Below are positions 353 to 53,968 of a stretch of DNA of 64,000 bases, piece by piece; position 1 is the stretch's first letter; the number at the start of each line of letters is the position of its first letter. Under the pieces are notes generated by a model, which had not been told where the DNA came from, did not search any database, and saw only the letters and a list, made by a program, of their open reading frames with translations. Where the stretch lies: assembly GCA_964035545.1 (NCBI GenBank), contig OZ037772.1:5026233-5090232 (forward strand), in the 5' to 3' direction. The translations under genes were made by a program, and so were the position numbers. Source of the stretch: Bugula neritina. Taxonomy: Eukaryota > Animalia > Bryozoa.

Positions 353-493
353 CATGTCTAATCTGAAGAATCTGGAGACTCTTGATATGTCACATAATAA
401 CTTCAGTGAAGGATTACCTGATGTATTCACATCAATGACATCTCTAAGAGAGTTGAATATTAGTTCCTGTGAACTACCAAATCTACCTGGGAG
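353..493 (+). CDS. LRR exon 1 (two LRRs, 47 aa, phase 2/2)
   Basis: tactatAG|C...GAG|GTtagt; MSNLKNLETLDMSHNNFSEGLPDVFTSMTSLRELNISSCELPNLPG. Confidence 0.9.
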
Positions 494-3400
494 GTTAGTA
501 AGAATGTATTAAATAAAATGTTCATTAGTGTGAAGGATATAATTCTTCAATAGAAGTACTTTTTTTTTTATTAAAATTATCTACAGGTTTTAAAGTTCTA
601 TAGTTTTACAAATTTTCTGCGTTTCAAAAGTGCAATATATTAGGTATTATAGAATCACAAGTACCAACTGTGTTACATACTTCCCATTGAAAGTCAACCA
701 CCGGCTTGCCAGCTGACGCACTAACTATTACACTACAAGGGTAATCCTAAAACTCCATGCAACCAGTTATTCTAAACTCTGCTGGTTCCCTTACTACTCA
801 TTCAGTTTAGGCTTCCCGGGCCTCTCAACTCTCTTGGCGTACTACCAAAATGCTATACTAAATGTGAAAGAGTTTGCTAACAATTACACATGGGTCGTTA
901 GGTAATCTCAACACCACACCAAGCTGTTCACATGTGCATTCAGCTCCCTGCTACCATAAAGCTATTCACGTGCACTAACCGTCATGATGTAAGAACTTCA
1001 ATTACAGAAGGTTCTAATTTTACATGCCCCTCCTTTCAAATGGAAGGATATCACAATTACTAGACATCAAATTTTTATAAGCGCATTACAGAGATTACTT
1101 GATTAGCATGTGAATAAAATCTTAGTTGTATATATTATATGCTTCACTTGGTCTAATACATGAGCTGCCTACTTGTATGACACAGCAGATGTGCACACCC
1201 AAAATCTACTACAATATTACTAAATGATGTTTCAATTACTATATTATGTTTACTATAGCATGTCTAATCTGGAGAATCTGGAGACTCTTGATATGTCAGG
1301 GAATAAGTTCAGTGAAGGATTACCTAATGTATTCACATCAATGACATCTCTAAGAACGTTGAATATGCAGATCTGTGAACTACCAACTCTACCTGAGAGG
1401 TTAGTGAAAGCAACTCAATATGAAATACAAATAATATGTTTTTATCTGTAGTACACGATACCCATTTCTTTATACTTAAATTTTTTGCTGTCAGGTAATT
1501 TCTGAAAATTTTTCAAACCAGTGAAATTATTCTTGCCATATTGTATATAATATGCAAATAAATACAAGCCAATAAAAATATTCTATGTAGTATTATGACA
1601 TATGGTTCTAGAATATATGAAAGATGTTACAATATTTTAATCTCCTATATTCCTTAATGCTTCAATTAAGTAAAAGGTAATGAGTTAAGTTCAGTATATA
1701 ATTTTTTTTCAGAAGATATACAGCTTAAGCTCTATTTTATAATATACCTGCAGACTAAAACTAGCCATTGATCTGACAACATAACGTATAATTGATATCT
1801 AAATTATACAGTCTTTTATTAGATACAATAAAAATTGTTAATTTGACAATCTTCAAATTTTAAAATATAACAAAAACAATTTATTTTAGCAAATCTTATG
1901 TAATTATCGAAAAGAAATTATTATTTATATGTGAATAAAATTTTAGTTGTACATCTGATGCTTCACTCAGTTTTGAAAAAAAGCTCATGCTGCAGTACAT
2001 GTTTCACATTTATATGTAATATCTACTGTTTATCTACTAATGTATTTTATTCTAACTTCATTTTCAATCGAATGAAATCTGTATGGCAATCGGCAATTTT
2101 ATGCTAGAATTACATTGTTTTAGCTTAAGATGGTTGTATTACTATATGATGCTTCAACTGGTATATTATGTTTACTATAGCATGTCTAACCTGAAGAATC
2201 TGGAGACTCTTGATATGTCACAGAATAAGTTCAGTGAAGGATTACCTGATGTATTCACATCAATGACATCTCTAACTACATTGTATATGCAGATCTGTGA
2301 ACTACCAACTTTACCTGAGAGGTTAGTGAGAATGCATTAAATGAAATGTTCATTAGTGTGAAGGATATAGTTCTTCAATAGAAGTACTTTTTTTTAATAA
2401 AATAATCTACAGGTTTTAAAGTTCTATAGTTTTACAAATTTTCTGCGTTTCAAAAGTGCAATATATTAGGTATTATAGAATCACAAGTACCAACTGTGTT
2501 ACATACTTCCCATTGAAAGTCAACCACCGGCTTGCCAGCTGACGCACTAACTATTACACTACAAGGGTAATCCTAAAACTCCATGCAACCAGTTATTCTA
2601 AACTCTGCTGGTTCCCTTACTACTCATTCAGTTTAGGCTTCCCGGGCCTCTCAACTCTCTTGGCGTACTACCAAAATGCTATACTAAATGTGAAAGAGTT
2701 TGCTAACAATTACACATGGGTCGTTAGGTAATCTCAACACCACACCAAGCTGTTCACATGTGCATTCAGCTCCCTGCTACCATAAAGCTATTCACGTGCA
2801 CTAACCGTCATGATGTAAGAACTTCAATTACAGAAGGTTCTAATTTTACATGCCCCTCCTTTCAAATGGAAGGATATCACAATTACTAGACATCAAATTT
2901 TTATAAGCGCATTACAGAGATTACTTGATTAGCATGTGAATAAAATCTTAGTTGTATATATTATATGCTTCACTTGGTCTAATACATGAGCTGCCTACTT
3001 GTATGACACAGCAGATGTGCACACCCAAAATCTACTACAATATTACTAAATGATGTTTCAATTACTATATTATGTTTACTATAGCATGTCTAATCTGGAG
3101 AATCTGGAGACTCTTGATATGTCAGGGAATAAGTTCAGTGAAGGATTACCTAATGTATTCACATCAATGACATCTCTAAGAACGTTGAATATGCAGATCT
3201 GTGAACTACCAACTCTACCTGAGAGGTTAGTGAAAGCAACTCAATATGAAATACAAATAATATGTTTTTATCTGTAGTACACGATACCCATTTTTTTATA
3301 CTTAAATTTTTTGCTGTCAGGTAATTTCTGAAAATTCTTCAAATCTGTAAAAGTATTCTTGCTATATTGTAAATAATATGCAAATAAATGCAAGCCAATG

Positions 3401-6400
3401 AAAAAGATTCTATGTAGTATTATGACATATGGTTCTAGAATATATAAAAATGTCACAATACTTTAATTTCCTATATTCCTCATCGCTTGAAATAAGTAAA
3501 AGTTGATGAGTTAGGTTTAGTATATAATTTTTTTCTTGAAAAGATATACAGCTTAAGCTCTATTATATAATATACCTGCAGACTAAAACTAGCCATTGAT
3601 CTGACAACATAATGTATAATTGATATCTAAATTATACAGCCTTCTATTAGATACAATAAAAATTGTTAATTTGACATTCTTTAAATTTTAAAGTATAACA
3701 AAAACAAATTATTCTAGCAAATCACCTGTAATTGTTGAAAAAAATTTCTTTTATATGTGAATAAAATTTTAGTTGTACATCTGATGCTTTACACAGTTTT
3801 GAAAAAAGGCTCATGCTGCAGTACATGTTTCACATGCATATGTAATACCTACTGCTTATCTACTAATATATTTTATTCCGACTTCATTTTCCATCGAATA
3901 AATGTATGCATGTCAATTGGCAATTTTATGCTAGAATTACATTGCTTTAGCTTAAGATGGTTTTATTACTATATGATGTCTCAACTGGTGTATGTTTACT
4001 ATAGCATGTCTAATCTAAAGAATCTAGAGACTCTTGATATGTCAGGGAATAAGTTCAGTGAAGGATTACCTAATGTATTCACATCAATGACATCTCTAAA
4101 GAACGTTGAATATGCAGATCTGTGAAATACCAACTCTACCTGAGAGGTTAGTGAAAGCAACTCAATATGAAATGCAAATCAACTATGTTATCTGTAGTAC
4201 ACGACATCCAGGATTTGCTTGCATTTCTTTATACTTAAATGTTTTGCTGCCAAATAATTTCTGAAAATTTTTCAAACCAGTGAAATTATTCTTGCCATAT
4301 TGTATATAATATGCAAATAAATACAAGCCAATAAAAAGATTCTATGTAGTATTATGACACATGGTTCTAGAATATATAAAAGATGTTACAATATTTTAAT
4401 CTCCTATATTCCTTAACCCTTTGGCGATCAACTTTGAAGTTACGTAATTTCAAGCCTCGTTTGAGTTTATCGCGAAATTTGCTAACAAATTTTGCATAAC
4501 TTTCAATTTCAATATTAAAAAGTTACACTTGATTTTGGCCTTAATTAAACTGGGTAATATAATTTTAAGAGTCTTTTCTTTTATAAAAAGCTTCTTAAAG
4601 TGACGGGAGACCTCAATTCTAGCTAAAATCAGTCATTTTAATTTGCCTCTCAAAACCGCTATTTTAAAATTGAAAAATCAAAATGATAAAATTAGTTTAT
4701 AATATGATTCAAAATATAGTGAATTTAACATTTCTGTTTATTTAGATAATCTTCTAAATGTAATCTGAATAAAATAAACTGGCTCTCTATAATTTGACAG
4801 CAGTTTCATGCATTTGAAAGTAGCGTTAAAATTTACCGATAATTTTGAAATTTAAGGATTAAATTGAAAAGCAACTAGCTGGCTTGGTAGCTATTAATTT
4901 AATCAAATTTAATGGCTCTAATTTTTCCAAAATTACTAAGCTGCCCTATCAACCTCAATTACAAAAAGTTTTAGGCTTTTCGGTTGAAAACTGGAAGTTT
5001 AAAGTAAGCGCTATTGTTTGTTTACCTAAAAGACCATATATGGTCCATTGATCTGTGGATAGTGTCGCTTTCAGGGACATATATGGTCCATTGATCGCGT
5101 AAGGGTTAACGCTTGAATTAAGTAAAAGGTAATGAGTTAAGTTCAGTATATATTTTTTTTTCAGAAGATATACAGCTTAAGCTCTATTATATAATATACC
5201 TGCAGACTAAAACTAGCCATTGATCTGACAACATAACGTATAATTGATATCTAAATTATACAGTCTTTTATTAGATACAATAAAAATTGTTAATTTGACA
5301 ATCTTCAAATTTTAAAATATAACAAAAACAATTTATTTTAGCAAATCTTATGTAATTATCGAAAAGAAATTATTTTATATGTGAATAAAATTTTAGTTGT
5401 ACATCTGATGCTTCACTCAGTTTTGAAAAAAAGCTCATGCTGCAGTACATGTTTCACATTTATATGTAATATCTACTGTTTATCTACTAATGTATTTTAT
5501 TCTAACTTCATTTTCAATCGAATGAAATCTGTATGGCAATCGGCAATTTTATGCTAGAATTACATTGCTTTAGCTTCAGATGGTTGTGTTACTATATGAT
5601 GCTTCAACTGGTATATTTTTACTATAGCATGTCTAATCTGAAGAATTTGGAGAGTCTTCTTATGCCATGGAATAAGTTCAGTGAAGGATTACCTGATGTA
5701 TTCACATCAATGACATCTCTAAGATTGTTGTATATGCCGATCTGTGAACTACCAAGTCTACCTGAGAGGTTAGTGAGAATGCATTAAATGAAATGTTCAT
5801 TAGTGTGAAGGATATAGTTCTTCAATAGAAGTACTTTTTTTTAATAAAATAATCTACAGTTTCTAAAGTTCTACAGTTTTACAAACCTTCTGCATTTCTT
5901 AAGTGCAATATATTAGGTTCACGGTAGAATCACAAGTACCAACTGTGTTACAAACTTCCCATTAAAAGTCAACCACCAGCTTGCCAACTGACCCACTAAC
6001 CATTACACTACAAGTGTAATCCTAACACTCCATGCAACCAGTTATTCTAAACTCTGCTGGTCCCCTTACTACTCATTAAGTTTAGGTTTCCCGGGCCTCT
6101 CAACTCTTTTGGCGTACTACCAAAATGCTATACTGAATGTGAAAGAGCTTGCTAACAATTACACATGTGTCACTAGGTAATGTCAACACTACACTAAGCT
6201 GCTCACATGTGCATTCAGCTTCCTGCTACCATAAAGCTATTCACCTGCACTAACCGTCATGATGTAAGAACTTCAATTACAGGAGGTTCTAATTCTACAT
6301 GCCCCTCCTTTCAAATAGAAGGAAATCACAATTACTAGACATCAAATCTTTATAAGCGCATTACAGAGATTACTTGATTAGCATGTGAATAAAATCTTAG

Positions 6401-9400
6401 TTGTGTATTTTATGCTTCACTTGGTCTAATATATGAGGTGCACACTTGTATGACACAGTAGATGTGCACAGCCATAATCTACTACCATATTACTAAATGA
6501 TGTTTCAATCACTATATTATGTTTACTATAGCATGTCTAATCTGGAGAATCTGGAGACTCTTGATATGTCACAGAATAACTTCAGTAAAGGATTACCTGA
6601 GGTATTCACATCAATGACATCTTTAGGAGAGTTGCATGTGAAGAATTGTAAATTAGAAACTCTACCTGAGAGGTTAGTGAAAGCAACTCAATATGAAATA
6701 CAAATAAACTATTTTATCTGTAGTACACGACATCCAGGATTTGCCCGCATTTCTTTATACTTAAATTTTTTGCTGCCAAATAATTTCTGAAAATTCTTCA
6801 AATCTGTAAAAGTATTCTTGCTATATTGTAAATAATATGCAAATAAATGCAAGCCAATGAAAAAGATTCTATGTAGTATTATGACATATGGTTCTAGAAT
6901 ATATAAAAATGTCACAATACTTTAATTTCCTATATTCCTCATCGCTTGAAATAAGTAAAAGTTGATGAGTTAGGTTCAGTATATAGTTTTTTTCTTGAAA
7001 AGATATACAGCCTAAGTTCTATTATATAACATACCTGCAGACTAAAACTAGCCATTGATCTGACAACATAACGTATAATTGATATCTAAATTATACAGCC
7101 TTCTATTAGATACAATAAAAATTGTTAATTTGACATTCTTTAAATTTTAAAGTATAACAAAAACAAATTATTCTAGCAAATCACCTGTAATTGTTGAAAA
7201 CAATTTCTTTTATATGTGAATAAAATTTTAGTTGTACATCTTATGCTTTACACAGTTTTGAAAAAAGGCTCATGCTGCAGTACATGTTTCACATGCATAT
7301 GTAATACCTACTGCTTATCTACTAATATATTTTATTCCGACTTCATTTTCCATCGAATAAATGTATGCATGTCAATTGGCAATTTTATGCTAGAATTACA
7401 TTGCTTTAGCTTAAGATGGTTTTATTACTATATGATGTCTCAACTGGTGTATGTTTACTATAGCATGTCTAATCTAAAGAATCTAGAGACTCTTGATATG
7501 TCAGGGAATAAGTTGAGTGAAGGATTACCTAATGTATTCACATCAATGACATCTCTAAGAACGTTGAATATGCAGATCTGTGAACTACCAACTCTACCTG
7601 AGAGGTTAGTGAGAATGCATTAAATAAGAAGTTCATTAGTGTGAAGGATATAGTTCTTCAATAGAAGTACTTTTTTTATTAACATTTTCTACAGTTTTAA
7701 AGTTCTACAGTTTTTAAAGTTCTTCAGTTTTACAAACCTTCTGCATTTCTTAAGCGTAATATATTAGGTTCACAGTAGAATCACAAGTACCAACTGTGTT
7801 ACATACTTCCCATTGAAAGTCAACCACCGGCTTGACAGCTGACGTTCTAGCCATTACACTACAAGTGTAATCCTAACACTCCATTCAACCAGTTATTCTA
7901 AACCCTGCTGGTTCCCTTACTACTCATTCAGTTTAGGCTTCCCCGGCCTCTCAACTCTCTTGGCGTACTACCAAAATGCTATACTGAATGTGAAAGAGCT
8001 CGCTAACAATTACACATGTGTCACTAGGTAATCTCAGCACTACACCAAGCTGTTCACATGTGCATTCAGTTCCCTGCTACCATAAAGATATTCACGTGCG
8101 CTAACCGTCATGATCTCATAACTTCAATTACAGGAAGTTGTAATTTTACATTTTATCTGCAGACATATTGGCAAATTAATAAACATCAAATGAATATGAA
8201 GTCAGTATAAGCAGCTTTTTATGAAATAAATTACAAAAAAATTATTATGATCAATAATATTATCATTATTATCATAGTAGGTCAGTTCAGGTAGAATGCC
8301 TGCTACCAGACAATTATGAAAACCGGTACAACCTAATTCATGTGGCTAGTGGTCAGCGACTAAACTAACAAGTGAGTGTGACTGGACATCTTTAGGTCTG
8401 TGGTGGGGGGGGCAAGCCAGTCGGTGTGAGGTGACACACACTCCCAGAAGTGCAGGGATTAACATACCTCTCTCTTAGTCAGTCCCTGCCACGTAAGTGC
8501 TATAGGTCATGCAAAAGCCAGTAGTACCTTCACTTCTTTGCAAGCCGTTTTCATGAAATGGTACGTCAATAGCACATTCATGCCGGCTCGAACATCGCTC
8601 AGAATAAGAAGATCTGCACTGATCTGTTCTTACTCTGGCAGTCAGCGTACAGTGTGCTTGGAGACAGAAGGAAAAGGGAAGAGATTTTCCCTTATATGTA
8701 ACAGAATAAAATGCACAAACACTAATTGATCTATCACAAGCACAGAATCCAGAAAGACAGACAGCTCTTGTAGCCATGGAGATGGACAAATATGGCATCA
8801 TTGCCAGGCTATGATAGTTTAATAGATCATAGGTATTTCTTCTACTAGAGTGGAAAGTCAGCTGATGAAAGTTGAGAAGCAGGAGTAGGACTTGCCGTCA
8901 AAAAAGAAGATTGCTGCCACTTTGAAGGGCAAACCAACTCCTGTGAATGATTGAATCATGATGATGAAACTTCCTTTTCAAAAGAGATTTCACGCGATTA
9001 CTATGACGAATACTGAAGAAGTAAACAAACAGTTCTACATTTATCTGAGAGACACAATCCATTGTGTTCTAGCTAATGATATATTAACACTGAGTGGTAA
9101 TTTTGTTGCAAGGATAGGCTCAGTTTTTGAGAAATAGAAAGGAGTACTTGGTAGTCATAGTGTAGGTAAGTGCAATAGAAATGGAGAGTTGCTTTTAGCT
9201 CTCTGTTTAGAGTACAGTCTTGTGTTAGCCTAGGGCCACACGGTGCGTATTTTTGCATGCGAAAATTGAAATCACAAGTAGCAAAGGTGTCCACTGTATG
9301 CGTTGAGAAAACATTCGCACTTGTCGCTCTGCATTTTCAACGCAAGTGCGAATCGTCTCTGTCGTCGTCACCTAATTGGCTGGTAGTTATTCAGCGAGCC

Positions 9401-12400
9401 CAATTTCTTTATTTAGTGCTATATTCCAGCAAATTGCGTTTTATTGAAAGCGAGTGCGATTTAAAAATGAAAGCTTTATTTATCACGCATCACTGACGCT
9501 ACAGTGGACACCTTTGCTACTTGTGATTTTAATTTTCGCATGCGAAAATACGCACCGTGTGGCCCTAGGCTTAACTAATACCATCTTCAAACACAAGGAA
9601 TCACACAGGAGTACATGAATGCTTCCACAAGTTAACAAATGGAACTTACTGGATTACATCATTCTCAGGCGAAGGAATTTGAGTGAGGTTTTAGTTACTC
9701 GAGCTGTAAGAGGAGCAGATTGTGGCACAGATCATGTAATGCTAAAATCAAAAATATAAGGATTAAAAGATAAAACATTGCAAGAAAGCCACCAATTAAA
9801 CTAAGCACTGTTATGCTGAAAGATCCAGAAAAAACAGAACAACTTAAAAAGAAATTGAATAAGAATATAAAGTGTTGAGATGAAAATAATAATGAGATAG
9901 ACAAATGTGGAAAATTTTGAGGAAAACGGTGTTTTCAACTGCTAGTGAAGTGGTTGGGAAGCAAGGCCGTAAACATCCGGATTGGTTTAATGAGCATGAT
10001 GAGCTACTACGGCAGTTGATTGAGAAGAGAAACAAGGCAAGACAAGCTTTCTTCCAGTGTAATACCAGAGTGAAAAGAAAGAGCTGCTTAAAAGTGCAAA
10101 GCAGTCTTCAGAGGTATACCAGAGAAATGAAAAATAACTGGTGGGAAAAAAAAGCAATAGAACTCCAAATGTCAGCAGACAGAAAAGACATGAAAGCATT
10201 ATATTTAGGCTTAAAAGAAGTTTATGATCCGAAATCAAGAGTAACGATTCACCTACGAGACCATAATGGAAACACAGTTTTACACGAGAAGGAAAAAATA
10301 TTAGAAATAATATCTGATCACTTCAATCCTTTGCTCAACATACCAGGCGAGCTGGATAAAGCAGCAAAAAACATAATGCAAAGGTCACGTGTTGCACTTT
10401 TGGATGGTCCGCCCAATATGGATGAGCGTGTGTCGGCAATTAGTTCATTGCGGGATGGAGAAGTTGTTGGCAGAAATGGTATTCCATTTGTGGTATGAAA
10501 GCATGCTGGTCAAAAAATGGCAGGGTGTCTTTACAATACAGAATGTATGGGACACCTAGACGGTACCACCAGACTGGACAGAAGCAAGCATTTTTCAATT
10601 TTTAAGAAAGGCAATATGAAAGTAAACGGGAATTATCGGCACATATCTTGTATCTATTGTAGGCAAGATTTTCTCTTGCATACTATCGACTAATTGCACA
10701 TACTATCCAAGAGGTGCTAGTGGAGTCTCAGTGTAAATTCAGGAGTGCGGAAAGAAGTCCAAGTGTAAAAGAGGTGCACAGAACAAAATATGCTACTTTT
10801 CGCAGTATTTTTTGACCTCAGTAAGGCATTTGATATTGTATATATTGCAAGCCTTCGGCAGGTCCTTAAAAGGTTTGGCTTCCCAGACAAGTTTATTTGC
10901 AATAATGAAGCACCTCATACAGGCATGCAAGTATATGTACCAATGAGTAGTTCTACTGCAAATGGAAAGCTTGGAAAAGGTATATATGTGAACACTAGAA
11001 AAGAAGCAGACCTGTTTGATGTAACTCATTTCAACTTTAAAACCAAAACCTTTACCGAGTTAGAGACTTGTTAAGGAAATGACAGGTTGTTTTTTTAAGC
11101 TTTTCCGGAGTGTGTGGGATACCACGACTGTTCCACAACACTTGAGCAATGCAAGCATTATCCCATTATTTAAGAAAGGCAATACACCAGGGGTGGGAAT
11201 TACTGGGGCATATCCCCTCTATCTATTGTAGGCAAGACTCTTTCCCATTGCTATTAAATCGGCTAAATGCCCATATTTTCTCAAAGGTGGTACTAGAGTC
11301 TTAGTGTTTTTTCAAGAGTGGAAGAAGTACAATTGATATGGTTTTCTGCTTGAAGGAAGTGCAAGAGAAGTGCATAGAACAAAATATGCCACTTTGCATA
11401 GTATGTTTTGATTTCAGCAAGGCATTTGACACTGTTTCTAGAACAGGCTTTTGGCAAGTCATTAAAAGGTTTGGCTGCACAGAAAAGTTTACCGGCAATA
11501 CTGAAGCTTTTTATACAGGCATGCAAGCAAATGTGGCAGTGAACGGTTCCATCTCAAATGAATTTGCAGTAACAAATGCTTGAGGTTGTCTTTAAAGAAT
11601 TAGAAAAGAGTCGGATCTGTTTGATGTTAGTCATATCAAGTCAAAATTTAAGACCACTACTGAGTTAGTGAAAGACTTGCTATTTGCTGGTGATATAAGT
11701 ACTTCAGTTTTTTTTTGTTCTCATGCTATACAGACTCCGGTCAACAGATTTGCCAATGCTGCAAAATATTGTAATCTTCAAAATTAACATCGACAAGACA
11801 GAAAGCCTCTACCAGCTTGCAAAATTTGAAAATGAAGCATATCAGCCAAACCCTATAGCCATCAATGGATAACTTTTAAAAAAGTGTCAAACCTTCAAGT
11901 ACTTTGGAAGCACAATAGCAGTGAGCACTAAACAAGATAATAAATTTATCTGAGAATTGGAAGCACTAGTGCAGTGTATGAAAAGTTGAGAACCAGACTT
12001 TGCACTGATTGTTAATTTTTAATCAAAGTCAAGTATCAGATGTACCATACTATAGTACTCGCTGCCTTACTGTATGGTGATGAGACTTGGAACATACACA
12101 GTGTGCAAGTAGACAGACTGCAAGCATATGTCATGCAATAAATATGCTCAATCATGGGTGTATTTTAGAGAGACAAGATTACTAACCAAAAAGTACAAAA
12201 GAGAGCTAGCTTAGCATCTTCAAAATCTGTCCTTATTCAAATAAACTTGAAATAGCTAGGGCATCTCGAAAAGATAGGTCATAGCCACTTACCTAAACAA
12301 CTTTTTTATCCGCAGCTAAAAAAAAGTAAACAAAGCCAAGGGAAGCCAATATTGAGATTTAAAGACACTGTAAAGCGAAATATAAAAAAGTTGGACATGT

Positions 12401-15400
12401 ACAGAGATAGCTGGCAAAGGAAGGGTTAATGTAGATATGGATGGAGACGTTTGATCAAACTAAATTGAAAAGAGTCATTGTCGCACCGACAGACTGCTCT
12501 GATGACGACAGTGATGGTGATGATGATAATGATGATGATGATAATGATGAAAATTCTCCTTATTACTTTTATTGTTGTTTTAAGATCATAGAAAACCAGA
12601 TATTTAATTTGTTCAAAAAAAACAGTTAGGTTTGATGTATCTATAACATTATCTTTTATAACATTTTGCTGTATTTAGTTTACTTCCAAGTGATGCTGAA
12701 AAATTTCTACAGTAAAACAGTTGCATAGAGCTGAGGTTTTTTAAATGACGTGTTTAAGAAAAATTTCCAGTGATAAGTTTGCAGACATCTTTGCAAATGC
12801 ATTATCGTCTGAAATGGGTGAAATATATTTTTTTAAAGATCTTCAAAAGCTATATTCAGAAGCAACTTGTTTGCTAGAATCTGACTTATTATATATCATA
12901 TTTTATCTGAATTACAGTTTGCAGTATTTGGAGAATCTGGAAGTTCTGGACATTCAGCGCAACAACATGACTATAATTCCAGAGGCGGTCTGCAACTTGA
13001 AAAAATTACGTAAAATAGATGTTTTTGGATGTGAAAGTCTAACCACTCCCCCTTATGAAGTCTGTACAGAAGGATTATCAGCTATCAGACAATACTACAG
13101 AGATCTTGCTAAAGGTAAAGGAAAAAGTCTTCCCCTAGTCACCATTGCCGTGATTGGTAACACAATGGCAGGGAAAACGAGTCTCATCAGAACATTGCAG
13201 AGTGAAGAGAGAAAAAGAGTGCTGACAAATCGTGGACCTGAGGTTGCCGTTGACGAAACAACTAAAGTTTTTAAAGTCGAAGAGTTGAAAGTAAATAATA
13301 CAGTTTTGAGACTAATTGACATGGGAGGACAACCAGTGTATCACATGACATACCAGCTAACACTTAAACAAAACTGCATGCCGATAGTAGTGGTGAACAT
13401 GGAGCATTATCATCAGCTGGCACAAGAAAAGGGAGACAGAGAGGCTCTGAGAAGACTGGCTTTTGATTGGCTGGCTCATTTATATGTGGCAAATCCTGGA
13501 ATTAGACAACCGAAACTGGTTTTTACTCACAAAGACAAGTTTGATGAGGAGAATTTCACAAAGCTGACTTATAATTTCACTAACACAGCTGATCTACTGA
13601 AAGATGAAATTATCAGAGAAGAGAAACAACTAGACCAAAGCTTAGCAGAGATAGAACATTTCCATCAACACAAAGAGCTGTTTCTGCGTGAGGATATCTA
13701 CTCAGTTGGAAAAGAAGATACTTTTCAAGTTTTTGAGAATATGAAATCTGCCATTTTTAATTCAGCTCAAAAATTTGTAAAGGTATTGCCAAAACTATGG
13801 GAAGATGTAAATGAGAAGGTTTTAGGATTGCAGACAGCATTCAGTACATTTGATGAGATACTTCATGCAGTGCAACAAGTAGGTAGAAGTATCACACCTG
13901 ATCAGCTCACCACAATCCTCACCTACATGCATGATTGTGGTAAGGTCTTGTGGTACAAAGATATCAAGGAGTTGAACTTGATTATTTTTCACAAAATTGA
14001 GGAAGTTACTAAACTACTCAAAGTCTTGTGTCGTCATGATAAAGATGCGTGCCATACTTGGCAATCAAGTTTTCAACCATTGCGATTGACTAATGGAGCC
14101 TTTCTTGAAGAAGAACAATTTGGAAAACTTGTAAGAGATTTCTTGTCAGCAGGAATCATGGGAAGCCAACTTCTAGAATATTTATTCAAAGCTGAGACAG
14201 CATTCTTTGATGAAAATGCATACCTACTTGCTGTCACTTTGCTGCAGAAAATCAGCATTATCTACGGACCAGTTGATCTGGAATCAAGGAGCTGCTTCAT
14301 TGTTCCCTTCTACTCTACTGATTACTTTGAAAACAATCTTACTACTGATGAAGACGTCATTCTCCATGCTGAAATCATGTTCAAAGGTCTCTCAATTCCA
14401 CAATATGTCTACCAGCAGATGAGTGTTGTTGTCCTACAAATGTTCCCGGATGAGACAAGTTTTTCCCTTGTTAGAAAAAACGGAGTAAAGGTTTTCCACG
14501 ATGACATCTCGGTGCGCCTTGTCCATGATGGTCTTTCAAGGAAGGCAGATGTTACAGTGTCTGGAGCAACAGAGAAAATCACAAACTGTTGGAAACACAT
14601 GGTCAGCATAACCAGGCAAATATCCAAGGAGATTCGGCGTTCATGGCCTGCCAGCAGAATGGTACACAAGTCTAGTTGTACGCACTGCATTCTGAAAGGT
14701 GAATCCAGTCCTGAATTTCAGGTTACTCCCAGCTGGTGTCTTGAATTTCAAACTGACGAACCATATCATCAGTTTCAGAAGGAGATGGTGACAGTTCTCT
14801 GTAGAGGAGATAAGATTTTGAGTCCACTTGTTCATCCCTGTAAGTCAGTAATGAGTAGTTGTGTGATGTTTCAATTGCAAGTAATATCATACTAGTTACC
14901 TGTTTGCACCGCTGAGTGCATGTCTGGTGTTGCTATTCCAGGCACCTCTTTAACAAGCCAAGAAACTCAAAGTCTCAAGAACATCATTGCAGGACTGAGA
15001 GAAAAAAAACAAGAGAAAAGCTCCAAAAGTGGTGAGCTACAGCCTTTCTTCAACATCTAGTAAATCCTTTTCTCATTTAGTATGTTGGTCTATAGCAAAC
15101 ATAAATGTCAAGTTTCTTGTTTTTGCAATAGCAAAGACACTCTAAAACAAAAACAAACTAGCGCAAGGTGACCAATGCAAAAATCATTAGAGAAAAAAGT
15201 ACATAAAATCTAAGTGCCTACATTTATACATTTTTTTTTCTATCAGAGTATTATTTTAATGAAACAATATGATAATTTTTACAATACAGAAGCTGTCAAA
15301 TCTCATCAGCAAACCACCACCACCTCTGTGGAAGATGAGCTGAGTGATCTCTCTGATGATGATGAATATATTCTACCTCCACAATCTGCTGTTGACAAAT

Positions 15401-17621
15401 TAAAACATCTTAAGCAAGTCCCTGTCTTTACAACTAAACAAAGTATAAAAGAGCTCTTTTCAAACACTGAGAAGGTAATGTAACAGCTTTTCGTACAACT
15501 CTATGGAAAGCCTTCAGCATTGCTCAAAAATACATGTATAGTAGTAATTTAAAAATATTTGTACTATTTTTGTCTCACAATTATAAAAAAAGTGTGTTAT
15601 TAGTATTAACTTCCTAACGTGCCTGTGTTATGCTTTAAGGGTATGTTATTAATTTAGCATTATTAGGTTCAGCACTTCACCTATCATATGTATTCCAATT
15701 AGGTGTTTGGTATGACAATGCCAAGAGGAACCGCTTTGATAATCAACAATGAAAAGATAACCAATAGCTCAGACAGACCAGGTTCTCAAGTTGATGTTCA
15801 AAATCTGAGTGACATGCTACGATCCTTTCAGTTCAATATTGAGATGAAAACAGATCTCACAGCTGAGGTGGCAGTTATGACCAATTTTGTTGTTTCTTTT
15901 AATTAATTTTAAGCTATATAATCACAAGTGTTGTTATAAGCAAATTCGACTCAGATATAATATAAGAGCTGAGTTTAAATCTTTTGATTTCTAATAATTT
16001 ATAAGTTAAAAGTTACGATTGTGCTTCTCATTTGCTTTTATATACTTTTAACCGTCTGAATCGTTTTACAAAAGCTCACAACTTTTACACAAATATACTC
16101 ATTATTTCCAATTTTTTATACAAACAGGAAATATACCAAACGGTTAAAGCAGAAATTAACAACAGCAGAAATGCTGACCACGGAATGTTCTTTCTGTTCA
16201 TTGGTTCTCATGGAGTTGAGAATCATGTCTATGGATCAGATGGAGAGTTGGTAAAACTGACAGACCCGTATGACCTGCTATCTGTTCCTCAGAATCCAGT
16301 GGTTGCTGACAAGCCTAAACTGGTTGTCATCCAAGCTTGCAGCATTGGTGAGTATTCTATATTTTCCATCTTACTATAAGCCCATGTATTTCAGCATCAA
16401 AAGTACCTCTACCAATCAAATACAATATATGAATCATTTAGATCTACCTAAATCTAAGAAAACAGAACACCCTGGTGCTGAGACTGCTACACCTTCAGTT
16501 TCTGTTGCTAGTACCATAGACAGAAGTCTGCTGGAGAGACGTCATGGTGAAAATTTATATGTTATGAAAGCTAGCTTTCCGTGTGAGTAAAAAGTTCTTT
16601 TTTTTAGATTACTATGTTCTCTGTAGATATTTGCTTTTACATCTAAACATAAAGTTGTTCTGTATGTGCTAACTTTTTTACAAAAAACCAAAATATTGCA
16701 TTCCAGTTCATGTCAGTTAGTAGAGCAATTTTCACATTAGTAGTAGAAAAGTGTTGGTTCTGGCTCAATCCCTGACACCGGAGAGTCGAAGACTCGACGG
16801 GGGAAGGGGGTTGAGCCAGAACCAACACTTTTCTACTACTCACATTATTACTTATAGCTATTCAAGTACTAAAAGTTCAGCTTTGTTGTATATTGTATAG
16901 CTTATAGTGCCTGGAGATTTTCTGACTGTGGATCTCTATTCATCAGATGCTTTGTTAGGACCATGTACCGACATGCCGGTCACAGAGACATGCATGAGAT
17001 CTATAAAATTGTGAGTGTGCTACATTTCATCTGATATAATATAGTAACATAGCTTCTCTCAAAACTTGTTTATGTATTCGGTGTCTCATCTCTTTTGTTT
17101 TCATAACGTGAAAGACCATAGTAATTAAATGAAAATAACTCAGAAAGAAATAGAAACACTGATTATGTTGACTTTCTCAATTTGAGAATATTTCTACATT
17201 ATGTTTCAACTCACATTTAAGTCTAAGAATTCCTTCTGGGGTGACAAGTTGCATTATTTTTATGTAGGTACAAAATCGGGTTAGAAAATTTTGTACAGAA
17301 AAGAGACTTTCTCTTGGACAACTACCAGTTGCTACAGACACTCTGACACACCACAGAAAGCTCTACCTGTTTCCAGGATACAATGGAAGTTCTGGTAAAG
17401 AGAAGGAGCTGAGTTTACTTCAACTCAGAAAGAGACATCAACATCCTCCATCCAAGTCATTTCTGTCCAGTTTAGCTGCACAGTCCACACTGTCAGAGTC
17501 AGCTAGCACTTCACAGCAGGCAGAGAGTGGACAAGGCAGCAAATCAAATAACCAGAAGAGAAAATTAGACTCCAGCAAGGATAGCATGCAAATTATAAAA
17601 CACAGAAAGTTGAGTGAATGA
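353..17621 (+). CDS. LRR-Roc-COR-caspase fusion protein (ROCO family), multi-exon, 5' end outside window
   Basis: Exons joined in frame by GT-AG introns: LRR exons 353-493, 1259-1399, 2181-2321, 3085-3225, (4005-4146 frameshifted), 5628-5768, 6532-6672, 7464-7604; LRR+Roc-COR 12918-14839; linker 14942-15031, 15290-15474; caspase 15703-15867, 16128-16347, 16442-16582, 16901-17010, 17268-17621 (TGA). Intron phases match at every junction if exon 4005-4146 is skipped. Confidence 0.85.
631..1024 (-). mobile_element. LTR-like segment in type A introns (other copies 2457-2850, 5904-6299, 7755-8150)
   Basis: TG...CA ends with imperfect terminal inverted repeat (TGCAATATATTAG / TGTAAAATTAG); purine tract AAAGGAGGGGCA abuts the TG on the - strand. 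Confidence 0.5.
1259..1399 (+). CDS. LRR exon 2
   Basis: Same splice sites, 141 nt; LETLDMSGN / LRTLNMQIC. Confidence 0.9.
2181..2321 (+). CDS. LRR exon 3
   Basis: Same splice sites, 141 nt; LETLDMSQN / LTTLYMQIC. Confidence 0.9.
3085..3225 (+). CDS. LRR exon 4 (same protein sequence as exon 2, 1826 bp downstream)
   Basis: ORF translations at 1224 and 3050 are identical. Confidence 0.9.
4005..4146 (+). pseudogene. LRR exon 5, frameshifted (142 nt)
   Basis: tctctAAAga at 4098-4100 versus tctctAAga in sister exons; reads ...SLKNVEYADL*; splice sites intact. Confidence 0.8.
4417..5105 (+). mobile_element. piggyBac-type non-autonomous element (MITE)
   Basis: TTAA target duplication (4413-4416, 5106-5109); TIR ccctttggcgatcaa / ttgatcgcgtaaggg; empty site tccttaatgc near 1651 in the sister intron. 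Confidence 0.9.
5628..5768 (+). CDS. LRR exon 6
   Basis: 141 nt; LESLLMPWN / LRLLYMPIC. Confidence 0.9.
6532..6672 (+). CDS. LRR exon 7
   Basis: 141 nt; LETLDMSQN / LGELHVKNC. Confidence 0.9.
7464..7604 (+). CDS. LRR exon 8
   Basis: 141 nt; LETLDMSGN / LRTLNMQIC. Confidence 0.9.
8270..12550 (+). mobile_element. Decayed RTE-clade non-LTR retrotransposon in ROCO intron
   Basis: Broken-frame motifs ERQTALVAMEM, LLDYII..VTRAVRGADCGTDH, HPDWFNEHD, WWEKKAIELQ, FD(L/F)SKAFD, GKPILRFKDTVK; (GAT)n-like tail at ~12500-12550. Confidence 0.85.
9228..9570. mobile_element. PIF/Harbinger-like MITE nested in the RTE
   Basis: ~70-bp TIR starting gcctagggccacacggtgcg; TTA duplication (9225-9227, 9571-9573); removal restores LVLTNTIFKH. 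Confidence 0.85.
12918..14839 (+). CDS. Large exon: terminal LRRs + cap, Roc GTPase and COR domains
   Basis: Phase-2 acceptor attacAG|T; LENLEVLDIQRN; cap LTTPPYEVCTEGLSAIRQYY; P-loop GNTMAGKTS; G3 DMGGQ; G4 THKD; COR-like LTYMHDCGKVLWY; donor CCCT|GTAAGT. Confidence 0.9.
15703..17621 (+). CDS. Caspase (peptidase C14) domain exons and basic C-terminal tail of the ROCO gene
   Basis: PRGTALIINN, DRPGSQVDVQNL, catalytic SHG, KPKLVVIQAC, p10 motifs SYSAWR..GSLFI and RKLYLFPG across five exons. Confidence 0.9.
16739..16840. mobile_element. 102-bp inverted-repeat mini element with Polinton/Maverick-like ends
   Basis: 30-bp perfect TIR AGTAGTAGAAAAGTGTTGGTTCTGGCTCAA; 6-bp duplication CACATT (16733-16738, 16841-16846). 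Confidence 0.75.
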
Positions 17622-22796: not shown

Positions 22797-23759
22797 TTAG
22801 TTGATTCCCATAGGTCGAATAACTCTGTGAGAACGTGTACCTATTCTTAAAATGTTTCTCACATGATCAATGTATTTTGGATGAAAAAAAATAAACATGA
22901 AGACATTCACAATCCCATACAATGAAAACAGACTTGCACTGACTGTCTCTAATACAACAGCTAATTTTGCAAGAAAACTAAAACTCTGACAAATAAGAAA
23001 TACGACACCGAGCGAAAAATGAAGTTGATAAAGCAGATAACTCCATATAATATATTTACTGGCTGATATTACCAGCTCATCTCCTGGTAAATTTCTTTGA
23101 GCCATCAGCTTCAGCTCTTTCCATACTTTGACAAGGAAAAAAGATGTAATGAATGACAGAGCTAGGAGCTCGAGTGCATACAAGATATACACTACACTGT
23201 ATCCCATCTCTCTTGACACAATTTGTATTGCTATTGCAGTCCAACAGAATTCTACTGTTGCTATCATATTAAGTGCAAAACAGTTTAACACTCCTAGAAG
23301 ATAAATTATTCCAGTCATAGACTTTATATTGTTAATGAAAAGGTGTGTGCCATATCTGTATGGGTGACACACTCCAATATATTTCTCAACGCTTGAAACC
23401 AGAAACACAAGAACTCTTGAAAAGGTTCCACATGCGATTATAGAAATTAGAAGTTTTGAAACCCAATAAGCTGTTTGTACACCGAGCTGTAAAACAATTT
23501 CTTTAAGTTTGCAACTGAAGAACACAGCATCCGAAACGCTGTATATTATGTCAGATAAACCGATGTTTACCAAAACCCAGAAAAATTTGGTTCTCTTAAG
23601 TTCTTTCATTCGGTTGAGTATAATGAGATGCAAGACATTGACAATAATAGAGAGGCAGTTTATCCCATCATTAATCTGTACAAATGAGTGGTAACACTTT
23701 TCTGTCTCATTGTGACATGGTAAAATCTCGTCATATGATGAGGTGTTGTTTCCTTCCAT
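22797..23759 (-). CDS. Divergent class A-like 7TM receptor (GPCR), intronless ORF, paralog 1
   Basis: 320 aa, seven hydrophobic segments, N-terminal N-glycosylation sequons, TM2 IGLSD, TM3 end SVEKYIGVCHP (DRY-like), TM7 VNVFMF. Confidence 0.8.
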   Translation of the reverse strand: MEGNNTSSYDEILPCHNETEKCYHSFVQINDGINCLSIIVNVLHLIILNRMKELKRTKFFWVLVNIGLSDIIYSVSDAVFFSCKLKEIVLQLGVQTAYWVSKLLISIIACGTFSRVLVFLVSSVEKYIGVCHPYRYGTHLFINNIKSMTGIIYLLGVLNCFALNMIATVEFCWTAIAIQIVSREMGYSVVYILYALELLALSFITSFFLVKVWKELKLMAQRNLPGDELVISASKYIIWSYLLYQLHFSLGVVFLICQSFSFLAKLAVVLETVSASLFSLYGIVNVFMFIFFHPKYIDHVRNILRIGTRSHRVIRPMGIN

Positions 23760-32659: not shown

Positions 32660-35600
32660 ATGCAAATTGCAATTTATTGATAAACCTCTTCAGATTGCTT
32701 CTGACAGGTATAAGAAAGTTGAACATCTAATTTGACAACTATTATTGACATCATAAGTAATATACTATGTGGTATGGAGTGCTATATTATCAATACTTAT
32801 ATTTCCCTAAAAGAAACGCATGCAAGTAAAAGTTATTTTTACATTGCAACTGACTTCTTAAATTTGGAAAGTTGTGGAACTTTCTTTCTTTTGAGTTTAA
32901 TTTTTTATCAAAACCTTTGCATTAAATCCTAGCAAAATATTAGCCAGATAACTCAACTATTTACACCAATGGCTTATCCCCAGTTCCAGATGCTCTAAAA
33001 TAATATTTTGGTCTCAGTTGCTTAAAAATTATGTATTCCTCTTTAATTTATAAACATATATTTTATATCTTTGCCAGTTTTACCACTACTCTGTAAGAAT
33101 TGGATAGTAAAACTTGAATCTGTAACAGATCTGCAGTCAAACAGTCCAAATGAAGACTGTTGGCACTTGAATAAAAAAGAATAATAATATAATCTAAACT
33201 ATTAGCTGTGTAACACAAGCCCAGCATAGCATTGTTCATCACATTTTGGTGTTGTTGAACTTTTGATAAAACAGTGTTTGTTCATTGCTCTGGTCTTGTA
33301 TTGTTTATCCTCTTTTTTATTAAGTGTTAAATCGCTGCATCTGCTAAAGCTTTTGAAAAAAATAATTCTTTTGAATAATTTACGGCACTCTATATATAGA
33401 AAAAACAATATATTTAGCATTTCATTAAAGTCTTTTAACAGCTTTCAAAACAAATAAAACTGTGCAACTTCAAATAGAATTTTCATGAAAGCAACAACAG
33501 CATATTCAAACAGAACTTACAATTGACAGCATTTGCACAAAATAGTAGTTGCTTACTTTATTCTAACAAGTACAACAAACTAAATCATTTTGTAGTGACC
33601 TTAGGTACTTAAATTATAGTACGTGTATGCAGTCGAATAAAAACTGAAAAGTTCTGGAAACTGAAATGAAATAATGTTAATTGTTAATTGATATCAATAG
33701 GCCGAATAACTATGTGAGAACGTGTACCTATTCTTAAAATGTTCTTCACATGATCAATGTACTTTGTATGAAAATAAATAAACATGAAAACATTCACAAT
33801 CCCATACAATGAAAACAGACTTGCACTGATTGTCTCTAATACAACAGCTAACTTTGCAAGAAAACTAAAACTCTGACAAATGAGAAATACGACACCGAGC
33901 AAAAAATGAAGTTGATACAGCAGATAACTCCATATAATATATTTACTGGCTGATATTACCAGCTCATCTCCTGGTAAATTTCTTTGAGCCATCAGCTTCA
34001 GCTTTTTCCATACTTTGACAAGGAAAAAAGATGTAATGAATGACAGAGCTAGGAGCTCGAGTGCATACAAGATATACACTACACTGTATCCCATCTCTCT
34101 TGACACAATTTGTATTGCTATTGCAGTCCAACAGAATTCTACTGTTGCTATCATATTAAGTGCAAAACAGTTTAACACTCCTAGAAGATAAACTATTCCA
34201 GTCATTGACTTAATATTGTTGATGAAAAAGTGTGTGCTATATTTGTATGGGTGACACACTCCAATATACTTCTCAACGCTTGAAACTAGAAACACAAGGA
34301 CTCTTGAAAAGGTTCCACGTGCAATTATAGAGATTAAAAGTTTTGAAACCCAATAAGCTGTTTGTACACCGAGCTGTAAAACAATTTCTTTAAGTTTACA
34401 ACTGAAGAACACAGCATCCGAAACGCTGTATAGTATATCAGACAAACCGATGTTTACCAACACCCAAAGAAATTTGGTTCTCTTAAGTTCTTTCATCCGG
34501 TTGAGTATAATGAGATGCAAGACATTGACAATTATAGAGAGACAGTTTATCCCATCATTAATCTGTACAAATGAGTGGTAACACTTCTCTGTCTCATTGT
34601 GACATGGTAAAATCTCGTCATATGATGAGGTGTTGTTTCCTTCCATTTTCTATAGCAAGAGAAAAGACATAATTAGTAAATCCACAAAATGATATGTATA
34701 TACAAATTAACTATAATGTATGTAAATTAAAAACAACAAATCAAACAAGAATAGAACGTACCTTTGAATTATGTGACTATTAAGTTATCTTTTAAAGTGA
34801 ATGAGGCTTATCAAATGACAGATTAAAACAGCTAAGCTCTACTATTAACTGATCTGGTTTAGTTTTTTAATTATTCTCAGGTGATTCCTCCGTGTGCTAT
34901 TGATAAATCTCTTATGATGTACTGCAGTGTATATCTTATTTCTTTCGTTAAAATCAGGCTTCAAGCAACAATTCTGAGCCAGCATCACGTGATTCAAAGC
35001 TCCTCAGTAAACACCATTGATTGGCTCTACTTCGGCATCAACTCAACCTGATTGCTTAAAACTTTATTTGAATATTTGTTAATTTATATATAGAAAAAGG
35101 CAGATGATTGGTTTAGTCTAACAATTTATATAACGTGATTGGTTAGAATGTATTGTGAAGCAAGTTACATCATTTATATATAGATATTGAATCATATGCG
35201 TTGCATATATATCTATATCGACTAAGGAAAATTTGAAATGCCACGTCTTCATATTACACTATTTGATGCTAAATGTTGTACCACTGTATCAATTGACGTT
35301 GAAGAATAGTCTACAATTATATAAGTAATAGCTACTTGTGATAGACTCAATCACTACCTGTACGGCATTTTGACAAATTTTCAAATTTAGACAACATGCA
35401 AAACGCTTGTTATAGGAGCATATTTCCAAGCAGGTTTACAATTAAAGCCCAGTCCAATTTATTAAAGTAGAATATAATAATCAATGACACTAAAACAAAC
35501 CTATACATGTAGATAGGCTAAAAACATGAATCATAATTTAAAACAACAAACCTATTAAAGTTTGAAAAACAGTGAAACCCTAGATGAGTATATAACATAC

Positions 35601-52785: not shown

Positions 52786-52860
<75 letters not shown>

Positions 52861-52934
52861 AAGTGTGTGTGTGTGTGCAAGTGTATGCGAGTGTGTGCAA
52901 GTGTGCGAGTGTATGCGAGTGTGTTCAGGTGTAG

Positions 52935-52998
<64 letters not shown>

Positions 52999-53914: not shown

Positions 53915-53968
<54 letters not shown>

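Follow-up and report, generated by a model that had tools for sequence, protein, structure and literature searches.

A predicted LRR-Roc-COR-caspase gene of the bryozoan Bugula neritina and the large tandem family to which it appears to belong

We analysed a 64,000-nucleotide (nt) stretch of the genome of the bryozoan Bugula neritina (assembly GCA_964035545.1, contig OZ037772.1, positions 5,026,233 to 5,090,232 of the forward strand). This whole stretch is referred to below as the window, and positions are those of the window unless a genome contig is named. The window consists of AT-rich eukaryotic DNA with a GC content of about 30–39%, and it carries a gene that joins leucine-rich repeats (LRRs), a Roc GTPase domain, a COR domain and a caspase. 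LRR cassettes, one large Roc-COR exon, two linker exons and five caspase exons are connected by GT-AG splices that keep the frame from 353 to 17621. The features of the locus are listed here together with the evidence for each.

353-493, + strand: first LRR cassette exon in the window; 141 nt with phase 1-1, encoding two LRRs in 47 amino acids (aa) (tblastn and splice sites ag/C...AG/gttagt)
1259-1399, + strand: LRR cassette exon 2, same sequence as exon 3085-3225 (tblastn and splice sites)
2181-2321, + strand: LRR cassette exon 3 (tblastn and splice sites)
3085-3225, + strand: LRR cassette exon 4 (tblastn and splice sites)
4005-4146, + strand: defective LRR cassette exon, 142 nt (tblastn and splice inspection)
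5628-5768, + strand: LRR cassette exon 6 (tblastn and splice sites)
6532-6672, + strand: LRR cassette exon 7 (tblastn and splice sites)
7464-7604, + strand: LRR cassette exon 8, the last ahead of the long intron (tblastn and splice sites)
9905-11583, + strand: degenerate retroelement remnants, intronic, non-coding for the protein (weak RVT_1 matches, list of open reading frames)
12918-14839, + strand: large exon with terminal LRRs and cap, Roc, COR-A and COR-B (Pfam, AlphaFold2, Foldseek, PDB profile)
14942-15031, + strand: linker exon 1, 30 aa (in frame, GT-AG; length of an RNA contig; exon of equal length in the closest paralogue, L013)
15290-15474, + strand: second linker exon, containing the acidic stretch SVEDELSDLSDDDEY and a conserved motif, TTKQSIKELFSNTEK (RNA contigs, conservation)
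15703-15867, + strand: caspase exon 1; encodes the first strand and, in DRPGS, an Arg of the S1 pocket (Peptidase_C14, 40.0 bits; joint 15474/15703)
16128-16347, + strand: caspase exon 2, catalytic His and Cys (QACS) (Peptidase_C14, 40.4 bits; joint 15867/16128)
16442-16582, + strand: caspase exon 3, linker between large and small subunit (RNA joint 16347/16442, in frame)
16901-17010, + strand: caspase exon 4, small subunit SYSAWR...GSLFIRC (RNA joints fitting 16582/16901)
17268-17621, + strand: caspase exon 5, Ser/Lys-rich tail of about 70 aa, stop TGA (joint 17010/17268 in three runs)

Conceptual splicing of the locus gives an in-window product of 1390 aa with no internal stop, ending in a TGA at 17619-17621. 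Parts of it are visible in the unspliced DNA: a 716-codon open reading frame (ORF) at 12745-14895 contains terminal LRRs, Roc and weak COR-A and COR-B signals (ORF list and Pfam), and the short ORFs 15703-15906 and 16032-16379 match Peptidase_C14 with 40 bits each. The frame of the cassettes continues into the large exon through the acceptor at 12918 (...LPES/LQYLENL...). An original prediction, made from the DNA letters alone, had proposed that a single frame runs through LRRs, Roc, COR, an acidic linker and finally a complete caspase, and all of these elements were recovered in place. The exon structure that it had drawn stood at the junctions 14839>14942, 15031>15290 and 15474>15703, which fit the RNA contigs described below, and was corrected at three points: the junction after the exon with the QAC motif, one frameshifted cassette, and the 5′ end, which lies farther upstream.

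At the first of these points, a splice 16347/16395 is out of frame, and the splice 16351/16395, with a weak donor and a 43-nt intron, is in frame but without RNA support, and was dropped in favour of 16347/16442. The latter (GTGAGT...AG, 94-nt intron) is also in frame and makes the intersubunit linker 17 aa shorter than 16351/16395 would. It is preferred because an RNA joint found in four runs, 16344>16441 with two letters between, fits only this splice, with one mismatch.

As for the 5′ end, cassette-plus-intron-like units occur at C8:5015067-5023171, which is 3–11 kb before the window start, so that 353 is the first exon in the window and not the start of the gene. The 5′ end of the gene is accordingly placed outside the window. 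More LRR cassette arrays lie at C8:4985548-4998944, 27–41 kb upstream, with no scored Roc-COR exon before the gene; these could be orphan arrays, a very long 5′ region, or part of an unscored paralogue.

The large exon divides into LRRs with their cap up to about 13115, Roc at about 13117-13626, COR-A at about 13636-14253 and COR-B at about 14254-14838. Pfam recognises Roc with 30.8 bits (cut-off 27), and its P-loop, GNTMAGKTS, lies at 13156-13182, with DMGGQ and THKD in the same exon. Residues G80, G85, K86, T87, S88, D134, G136, G137, T203, H204 and D206 are invariant in 24 homologues. A profile built from these homologues matched, in the PDB, the Roco protein of C. tepidum (CtRoco; 3dpu at 9.6e-20 and 6hlu at 2e-18), M. 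barkeri Roco2 (4wnr, 2.5e-19) and LRRK2 (about 1e-12).

The AlphaFold2 (AF2) model of the large exon has a mean predicted local distance difference test score (pLDDT) of 86.1 and a predicted template modelling score (pTM) of 0.85. Foldseek searches with this model returned LRRK1 (1.9e-21), the LRR-Roc-COR structure of CtRoco (6hlu, 4.7e-20), many LRRK2 structures, and CtRoco Roc-COR (3dpu, 2.1e-17, template modelling (TM) score 0.64 on the target); the alignments to LRRK1, 6hlu and 3dpu span 580–700 columns. The isolated COR domain 3dpt was matched as well (4.9e-9, TM 0.64), and these matches settle the COR assignment where Pfam fell below its threshold. With the Roc G1, G3 and G4 motifs present and COR-A and COR-B modelled C-terminal of Roc, the predicted gene product is a true ROCO protein.

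The ratio of non-synonymous to synonymous rates (omega) between the window and its nearest paralogue is 0.16 for Roc, 0.33 for COR-A and 0.34 for COR-B, at a synonymous divergence (dS) of 0.16, a pattern that indicates purifying selection on the Roc-COR module. A separate observation concerns nucleotide binding elsewhere in the family: in the full-length Watersipora subatra protein XP_067948342.1, the P-loop is degenerate (VVVVGKSSSRKK, residues about 495-510) and Pfam gives no Roc match, while the caspase is complete. Nucleotide binding may have been lost in some family members.

The caspase was identified on two separate exons, with Peptidase_C14 scores of 40.0 and 40.4 bits against a Pfam cut-off of 21.4 bits. 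The codon of the catalytic His (SHG) lies at 16209-16211, that of the Cys (QAC) at 16338-16340, and AWR in exon 16901-17010; the small-subunit motifs SYSAWR...GSLFIRC and QLPV...KLYLFPG were found in the spliced product. By alignment to caspase-2 and caspase-3 and by caspase numbering, we take three residues to form the S1 pocket for Asp, namely Arg in DRPGS, Gln in QAC and Arg in AWR. The closest PDB matches of the His/Cys exon are caspase-2 (8.3e-7) and CED-3 (2.6e-6), and the complete caspase of a Watersipora homologue is closest to caspase-3, CED-3, caspase-9 and caspase-8 (1e-18 to 1e-22). Judged by these matches, the protease belongs with the ordinary C14A caspases of metazoans and is no bacterial caspase-like domain.

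Among sampled paralogues, the catalytic His was present in 19 of 19 and the Cys in all 18 that the alignment reached (that of L023 ends before the Cys). The Gln before the Cys is less constant: QAC is replaced by EVC or ETC in L019, L024, L027-L029 and L031, and by HAC in L022, L025, L026 and L030, so S1 specificity may differ between the QAC, HAC, EVC and ETC subfamilies. In the linker, SD[LV]SD with its acidic run and the pre-caspase motif T[TN][KQ]QSIK.LF.NT.K are common to the locus and the B. neritina GenBank protein EB796_002463, and the acidic SDVSD stretch is kept in W. subatra XP_067948342.1.

Evidence that the COR and caspase exons are transcribed together came from RNA contigs of four runs (X1–X4) belonging to three studies. 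Their joints skip introns at GT..AG sites, which identifies these contigs as transcript assemblies. Record 5 of X1 (639 nt) aligns to 14513-14832, continues with 89 unaligned letters and resumes at 15282-15472, joining COR-B to the linker; its total length fits exon 14942-15031 plus the exon ends (89 + 8 letters between 14832 and 15290). Record 12 of X2 joins 15282-15472 to 15701-15868, that is, linker to caspase, and the joint 15474/15703 was seen in three runs. Further RNA joints at 15867/16128, 16347/16442, 16582/16901 and 17010/17268 mean that all junctions from COR to caspase are bridged; for 16582/16901, the joints observed were 16580>16903 and 16580>16914, whose lengths fit this splice. 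One contig extends beyond the stop, to 17681. In X1, 13 of 79 aligned contigs are at least 99% identical to the locus. The fusion is thus supported at the family level by overlapping short contigs.

Independently of the RNA data, the same arrangement recurs in paralogues. Linker and caspase exons were found on the same strand within 7.5 kb downstream in 19 of 20 fetched paralogue loci, and the Roc-COR exons of the sampled paralogues are about 47–85% identical to that of the window. At the remaining locus, L021 (C1:34563172-34572597), no caspase exon was detected within 7.5 kb downstream of the Roc-COR exon, which could reflect loss, a longer intron or a different effector. The closest paralogue, L013 (C8:4819808), has exons of equal length and conserved AG/GT boundaries, bar one GC donor. 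This donor follows its 90-nt linker exon (2189-2278 of L013), which is 87% identical to that of the window, versus 93–100% for the caspase exons. A JGI metagenome contig from another assembly carries a cassette exon, a Roc-COR exon and caspase exons in the same order.

The LRR part of the locus consists of eight near-identical exons, starting at 353, 1259, 2181, 3085, 4005, 5628, 6532 and 7464, with two LRRs per exon. Every cassette but 4005-4146 is exactly 141 nt long, has phase 1-1 and runs from ag/C to AG/gttagt. In exon 4005-4146, a single extra A (TCTCTAAAGAAC versus TCTCTAAGAAC) creates a +1 frameshift. Kept in the transcript, this exon would lead to a stop at in-window residue 227; skipped, it leaves the frame intact, since the phase symmetry of the cassettes allows the bad exon to be passed over in frame. 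This cassette may be a pseudo-exon, may be skipped during splicing, or may reflect an error in the assembly.

Within the gene, those cassette pairs that share 92–99% identity in their flanking introns share just 84–89% in their exons. The pooled omega of the cassettes, calculated by the Nei–Gojobori method, is 1.06 (range 0.3–2.6); raw counts of non-synonymous and synonymous differences overstated the case and were replaced by this estimate. Replacements are confined to 17 of 46 columns, mostly at the x positions of LxxLxLxxN-type motifs, and the other 29 columns are invariant. This is the pattern expected from diversifying selection on a binding surface and, with small counts, is suggestive of it; gene conversion or exon shuffling could have contributed.

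Between the last cassette and the Roc-COR exon lies an intron of 5.3 kb (7604-12918), with weak RVT_1 matches on ORFs 10790-11071 and 11338-11580. Degenerate reverse-transcriptase fragments together with a 197-aa ORF occupy 9905-11583 on the + strand, ahead of the Roc-COR exon, in what looks like an old retroelement insertion. The long intron is about 1.5 kb longer than its counterpart in the closest paralogue.

We searched the genome (216 Mb, 321 contigs) with the large Roc-COR exon as the query. The number of paralogues, which the original prediction had named as a check, proved to be high: out of 536 first-look candidates, 64 were scored, of which 62 were full-length and intact. Each of the 62 scored E < 1e-179, and in nearly every one the exon ORF, 633–753 aa long, was free of stops. 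The scored copies lie in tandem clusters on C1 (about 32.5–35.5 Mb), C6, C5, C8, C3 and other contigs. The Peptidase_C14 search of the genome gave 300 candidates and 177 exon-level matches, many of which follow a scored same-strand Roc-COR exon at a distance of 1–4 kb; beyond the fetched loci, about 30 such pairs are seen from coordinates only. These counts point to at least 60 LRR-Roc-COR-caspase genes in the genome and possibly hundreds. In a tree of Roc-COR exons, whose genome rows are the best matches to this gene and whose L019 row is an artefact (wrong ORF, branch length 9.8), the sequences resolve into recent tandem duplicates and at least two older subfamilies.

Receptors built on STAND (signal transduction ATPases with numerous domains) modules seem to be scarce in the genome of this bryozoan. 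An exon-wise search, from which domains split over small exons can escape, gave no NB-ARC match, one weak NACHT match (33 bits) and four CARD matches, and with the same reservation it revealed no expanded NLR repertoire.

Relatives of the gene are present in protein databases of bryozoans. B. neritina EB796_002463 (907 aa) contains LRR, Roc, COR-A, COR-B and part of C14, and matches another cluster of the genome, on C7, with 85–90% identity. Two RefSeq models of W. subatra, XP_067948342.1 (1413 aa) and XP_067947674.1 (1419 aa), combine LRRs and a Roc-COR region with a complete Peptidase_C14 (E = 5e-40 and 1.5e-36, respectively); among the Roc-COR domains Pfam calls COR-A only, in XP_067948342.1 only, and the region is otherwise assigned by homology. 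At least seven further Watersipora proteins with LRRs and a caspase are found in RefSeq, several of them auto-named "MFHAS1 homolog". A protein search with the caspase region of homologue P0066 returned only Watersipora proteins and one unrelated ankyrin-caspase, and one with residues 470-1413 of XP_067948342.1 matched nothing beyond its own query, a limit set by the word filter; these results do not imply absence from other phyla. In the N-termini of the homologues, neither a signal peptide nor a transmembrane segment was detected, so the product is probably cytosolic.

Gene structure, domain identities, conservation of the catalytic residues, family-level splicing, family expansion and the pattern of selection are the observations from which a plausible mechanism can be drawn, with the sensing of a ligand, control by GTP, activation through dimerisation and an output in immunity or cell death as its inferred parts. 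The variable LRR surface would recognise a ligand, which might be microbial, viral or altered-self. Roc-COR would serve as a nucleotide-dependent switch and dimerisation scaffold, and two tethered caspases would be activated through enforced proximity or through release from autoinhibition by the LRRs. The active caspases would then cause cell death or proteolytic signalling without a death-fold adaptor.

We lean modestly towards the view that the locus is a member of a large tandem LRR-Roc-COR-caspase family in cheilostome bryozoans and works in this way, as sensor, switch and protease. The idea of an NLR-like immune or death sensor, put forward in the original prediction, fits the architecture, the size of the family, purifying selection on Roc-COR, the variable LRRs, the kept catalytic residues and the scarcity of NACHT and NB-ARC; the mechanism itself is a plausible proposal. 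A bolder extension, to which we give tentative and somewhat less than even credence, is that the main intracellular surveillance in cheilostomes relies on several hundred single-chain ROCO-caspases and not on NLRs, with diversity arising from duplication, shuffling and possible alternative splicing of LRR cassettes, as an apparently independent animal counterpart of bacterial systems.

Several points weigh against this interpretation. Most RNA contigs are 90–95% identical to the window, which marks them as transcripts of paralogues, and among the RNA contigs of the four runs no single molecule spans LRR to caspase. The frameshifted cassette, the retroelement-bearing intron and the position of the 5′ end outside the window mean that the locus may not make a full-length protein. 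The Pfam scores of COR-A (16 bits) and COR-B (15.5 bits) are both under the cut-off, which some homologues do pass for COR-A (P0084, 40.4 bits). A cassette omega near 1 could equally result from relaxed constraint or gene conversion and not from positive selection. A predicted homodimer of COR-B (two copies of exon residues 440-640) scored 0.00 with an uncertain fold, and is listed here although it is evidence neither way. Finally, a scheme in which GTP binding leads to a dimer and then to an active caspase may be wrong in its direction. The C. tepidum Roco protein is a dimer when nucleotide-free or GDP-bound and a monomer with GTP, and the LRR of LRRK2 covers the kinase site, so that release of autoinhibition is at least as likely as GTP-driven dimerisation.

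The alternatives differ in whether they concern the gene itself or its role. That COR and caspase belong to different genes, the LRR-Roc-COR gene lying upstream of a caspase gene and linked to it by annotation or read-through transcripts only, was one of the cases that the original prediction had named as its refutation, and we regard it as highly improbable. The joins are indeed known from short assembled contigs of 380–640 nt, mostly derived from paralogues; these contigs nevertheless cross GT-AG introns from COR to linker and from linker to caspase, the linker exons keep the frame and show conservation between genera, and the first caspase exon is without a start context of its own. Moreover, the order is kept in 19 of 20 paralogues, down to about 47% Roc-COR identity, as well as in the metagenome contig and in the Watersipora and Bugula models. 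Decay of this particular copy within an otherwise functional family, the frameshifted cassette causing truncation or nonsense-mediated decay, is unlikely. In its favour are the insertion in exon 4005-4146, with the early stop that follows when the exon is kept, the retroelement within the last LRR intron and the position of the gene's 5′ part outside the window. On the other side, the remaining exons are all open, the low Roc-COR omega values speak of constraint, the caspase exons and splice sites agree closely with those of L013, the bad cassette can be skipped in frame, and RNA contigs at least 99% identical to the locus exist.

If the fused and functional gene is accepted, the same molecule might serve in allorecognition, deciding on colony fusion or rejection and not sensing pathogens, a role that we consider quite unlikely. 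A parallel exists in the NLRs of fungal heterokaryon incompatibility, where polymorphic repeats are linked to a death effector, and a large tandem family with variable LRR cassettes and a death protease fits self/non-self discrimination equally well. Bryozoans are colonial, and allo-incompatibility has been cited as a context for apoptosis (PMC8195603). The product is apparently cytosolic, whereas allorecognition by contact usually needs surface molecules; the immune role and the allorecognition role are not mutually exclusive. A role in developmental cell death, such as cyclic polypide regression, or as a GTPase-scaffolded signalling protease that is no recognition receptor, appears very unlikely. 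Caspases whose N-terminal regions are long and regulatory take part in developmental death, and bryozoans show recurrent tissue regression, but a housekeeping function would leave unexplained both the tens to hundreds of tandem paralogues and the concentration of replacements at the variable LRR positions of the cassettes.

The rest of the window contains features apart from this gene. Two 320-aa ORFs on the − strand, 22797-23759 and 33684-34646, lie about 10.9 kb apart and both give a weak rhodopsin-type seven-transmembrane signal (E = 0.002 and 0.0075) under the Pfam cut-off; the pair may represent a tandemly duplicated intron-less gene resembling those of G-protein-coupled receptors. At 52853-55059, a 2.2-kb array of the 10-nt unit GTGTGTGCAA, in about 227 copies, produces a GC-rich, strongly GC-skewed block with spurious ORFs in all frames. 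A 25-nt tandem repeat with about 31 copies occupies 46323-47130.

Returning to the LRR-Roc-COR-caspase gene, the data describe, at the sequence level, a family of animal ROCOs that has gone unstudied and has a caspase as its effector. Databases already contain members, as models that lack annotation or bear a wrong name. The family looks like an undescribed family of animal immune or cell-death receptors. If this is true, the family would provide a third way to sense inside the cell and then kill, beside the STAND-ATPase inflammasome and the apoptosome, with a ROCO GTPase as the switch and no need for a death-fold adaptor. ROCO proteins would thereby gain a directly readable output in the form of caspase activity, and such a read-out could help to show what the LRR-Roc-COR core senses and how its nucleotide state is transmitted, a long-standing question in LRRK2 and MFHAS1 research. 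It would also reveal a repertoire for immunity or allorecognition, specific to its lineage, in a phylum with hardly any studies of immunity, and a convergence of animal systems with the conflict systems that Kaur et al. 2021 predicted in bacteria (PMC8195603). On novelty, the original prediction had known of no characterised animal protein with this architecture. No characterised one was found, and no paper on an animal Roc-COR-caspase was found in the searchable literature, most subscription journals lying outside its reach; the layout itself does exist in the W. subatra and B. neritina database models and in bacterial LRR-Roc-COR-caspase proteins (PMC8195603).

These bacterial proteins are the closest known match in module order. 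LRR-AP-GTPase(Roc)-COR-effector conflict proteins of bacteria were described computationally (Kaur, Iyer, Burroughs, Aravind 2021, eLife, PMC8195603); their C-terminal slot takes any of at least 24 effector domains, caspase included, their N-terminal LRRs evolve fast, several paralogues occur per genome, and they are predicted to be death systems directed against invaders. The order LRR-Roc-COR-caspase is common to them and to the bryozoan gene. The bacterial systems are intron-less computational predictions, whereas the bryozoan gene has 15 or more exons on an animal chromosome and belongs to a far larger family; its effector, a C14A caspase of metazoan type, has its nearest matches in caspase-2, caspase-3 and CED-3, unlike the bacterial caspase-like or CHAT domains. 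With a metazoan-type caspase in an intron-rich gene of a larger family, the fusion looks like domain shuffling that took place independently in animals and not like the transfer of a gene from bacteria; the bryozoan gene is an analogue, and not a member, of the bacterial LRR-AP-GTPase-COR-caspase class. Cyanobacterial clusters combining COR-A/COR-B with CHAT also appeared in a protein atlas, whose matches, scored 0.75–0.86 overall, are leads only.

With the animal ROCOs MFHAS1/MASL1, LRRK1, LRRK2 and DAPK1, the bryozoan protein has the ROCO core in common, and its AF2 model superposes on LRRK1, LRRK2 and CtRoco. MFHAS1 lacks an effector domain, a kinase and WD40 repeats are present in LRRK1 and LRRK2, and DAPK1 combines a kinase with a death domain; to our knowledge, none of the four has a caspase and none belongs to a family of tens to hundreds. 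The MFHAS1 layout, with no further catalytic domain, is not what was found, a complete caspase following COR here and in XP_067948342.1 and XP_067947674.1, and "MFHAS1 homolog" is an automatic RefSeq name. A parallel in gene structure is offered by the LRR-ROCOs of brown algae, which are proposed as immune receptors and whose LRR exons undergo shuffling (Teng et al. 2024, PMC11378527, which cites Zambounis et al. 2012). Like the bryozoan gene, they form an expanded family whose LRR cassette exons, of the same size and phase, duplicate, shuffle and vary. The algal exon, however, encodes one LRR in 72 bp with phase 2 and the protein has no C-terminal effector, whereas the bryozoan exon encodes two LRRs in 141 nt with phase 1-1 and a caspase is attached.

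In its proposed logic, the bryozoan gene resembles the NLR inflammasome and the Apaf-1 apoptosome, in which a repeat sensor, an NTP-dependent switch and oligomeriser, caspase activation by proximity and lineage-specific expansion come together. Its switch, however, is no STAND ATPase but a Ras-like GTPase coupled to COR, and since one chain also includes the caspase, no CARD, PYD or death adaptor would be needed. Pfam gave no NACHT or NB-ARC match, the STAND ATPase by which NLRs are defined, in the protein of the locus, and the gene is best described as NLR-like in layout and not as a member of the NLR family. Among the protein-atlas leads (0.75–0.79) are mollusc clusters with Roc, COR-A and Death and sponge clusters with Roc, COR-A and CARD, which suggest that ROCO modules are often wired to caspase-recruiting death-fold adaptors. 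Such mollusc and sponge proteins would act through an adaptor, whereas the bryozoan protein has the protease itself fused to its ROCO core.

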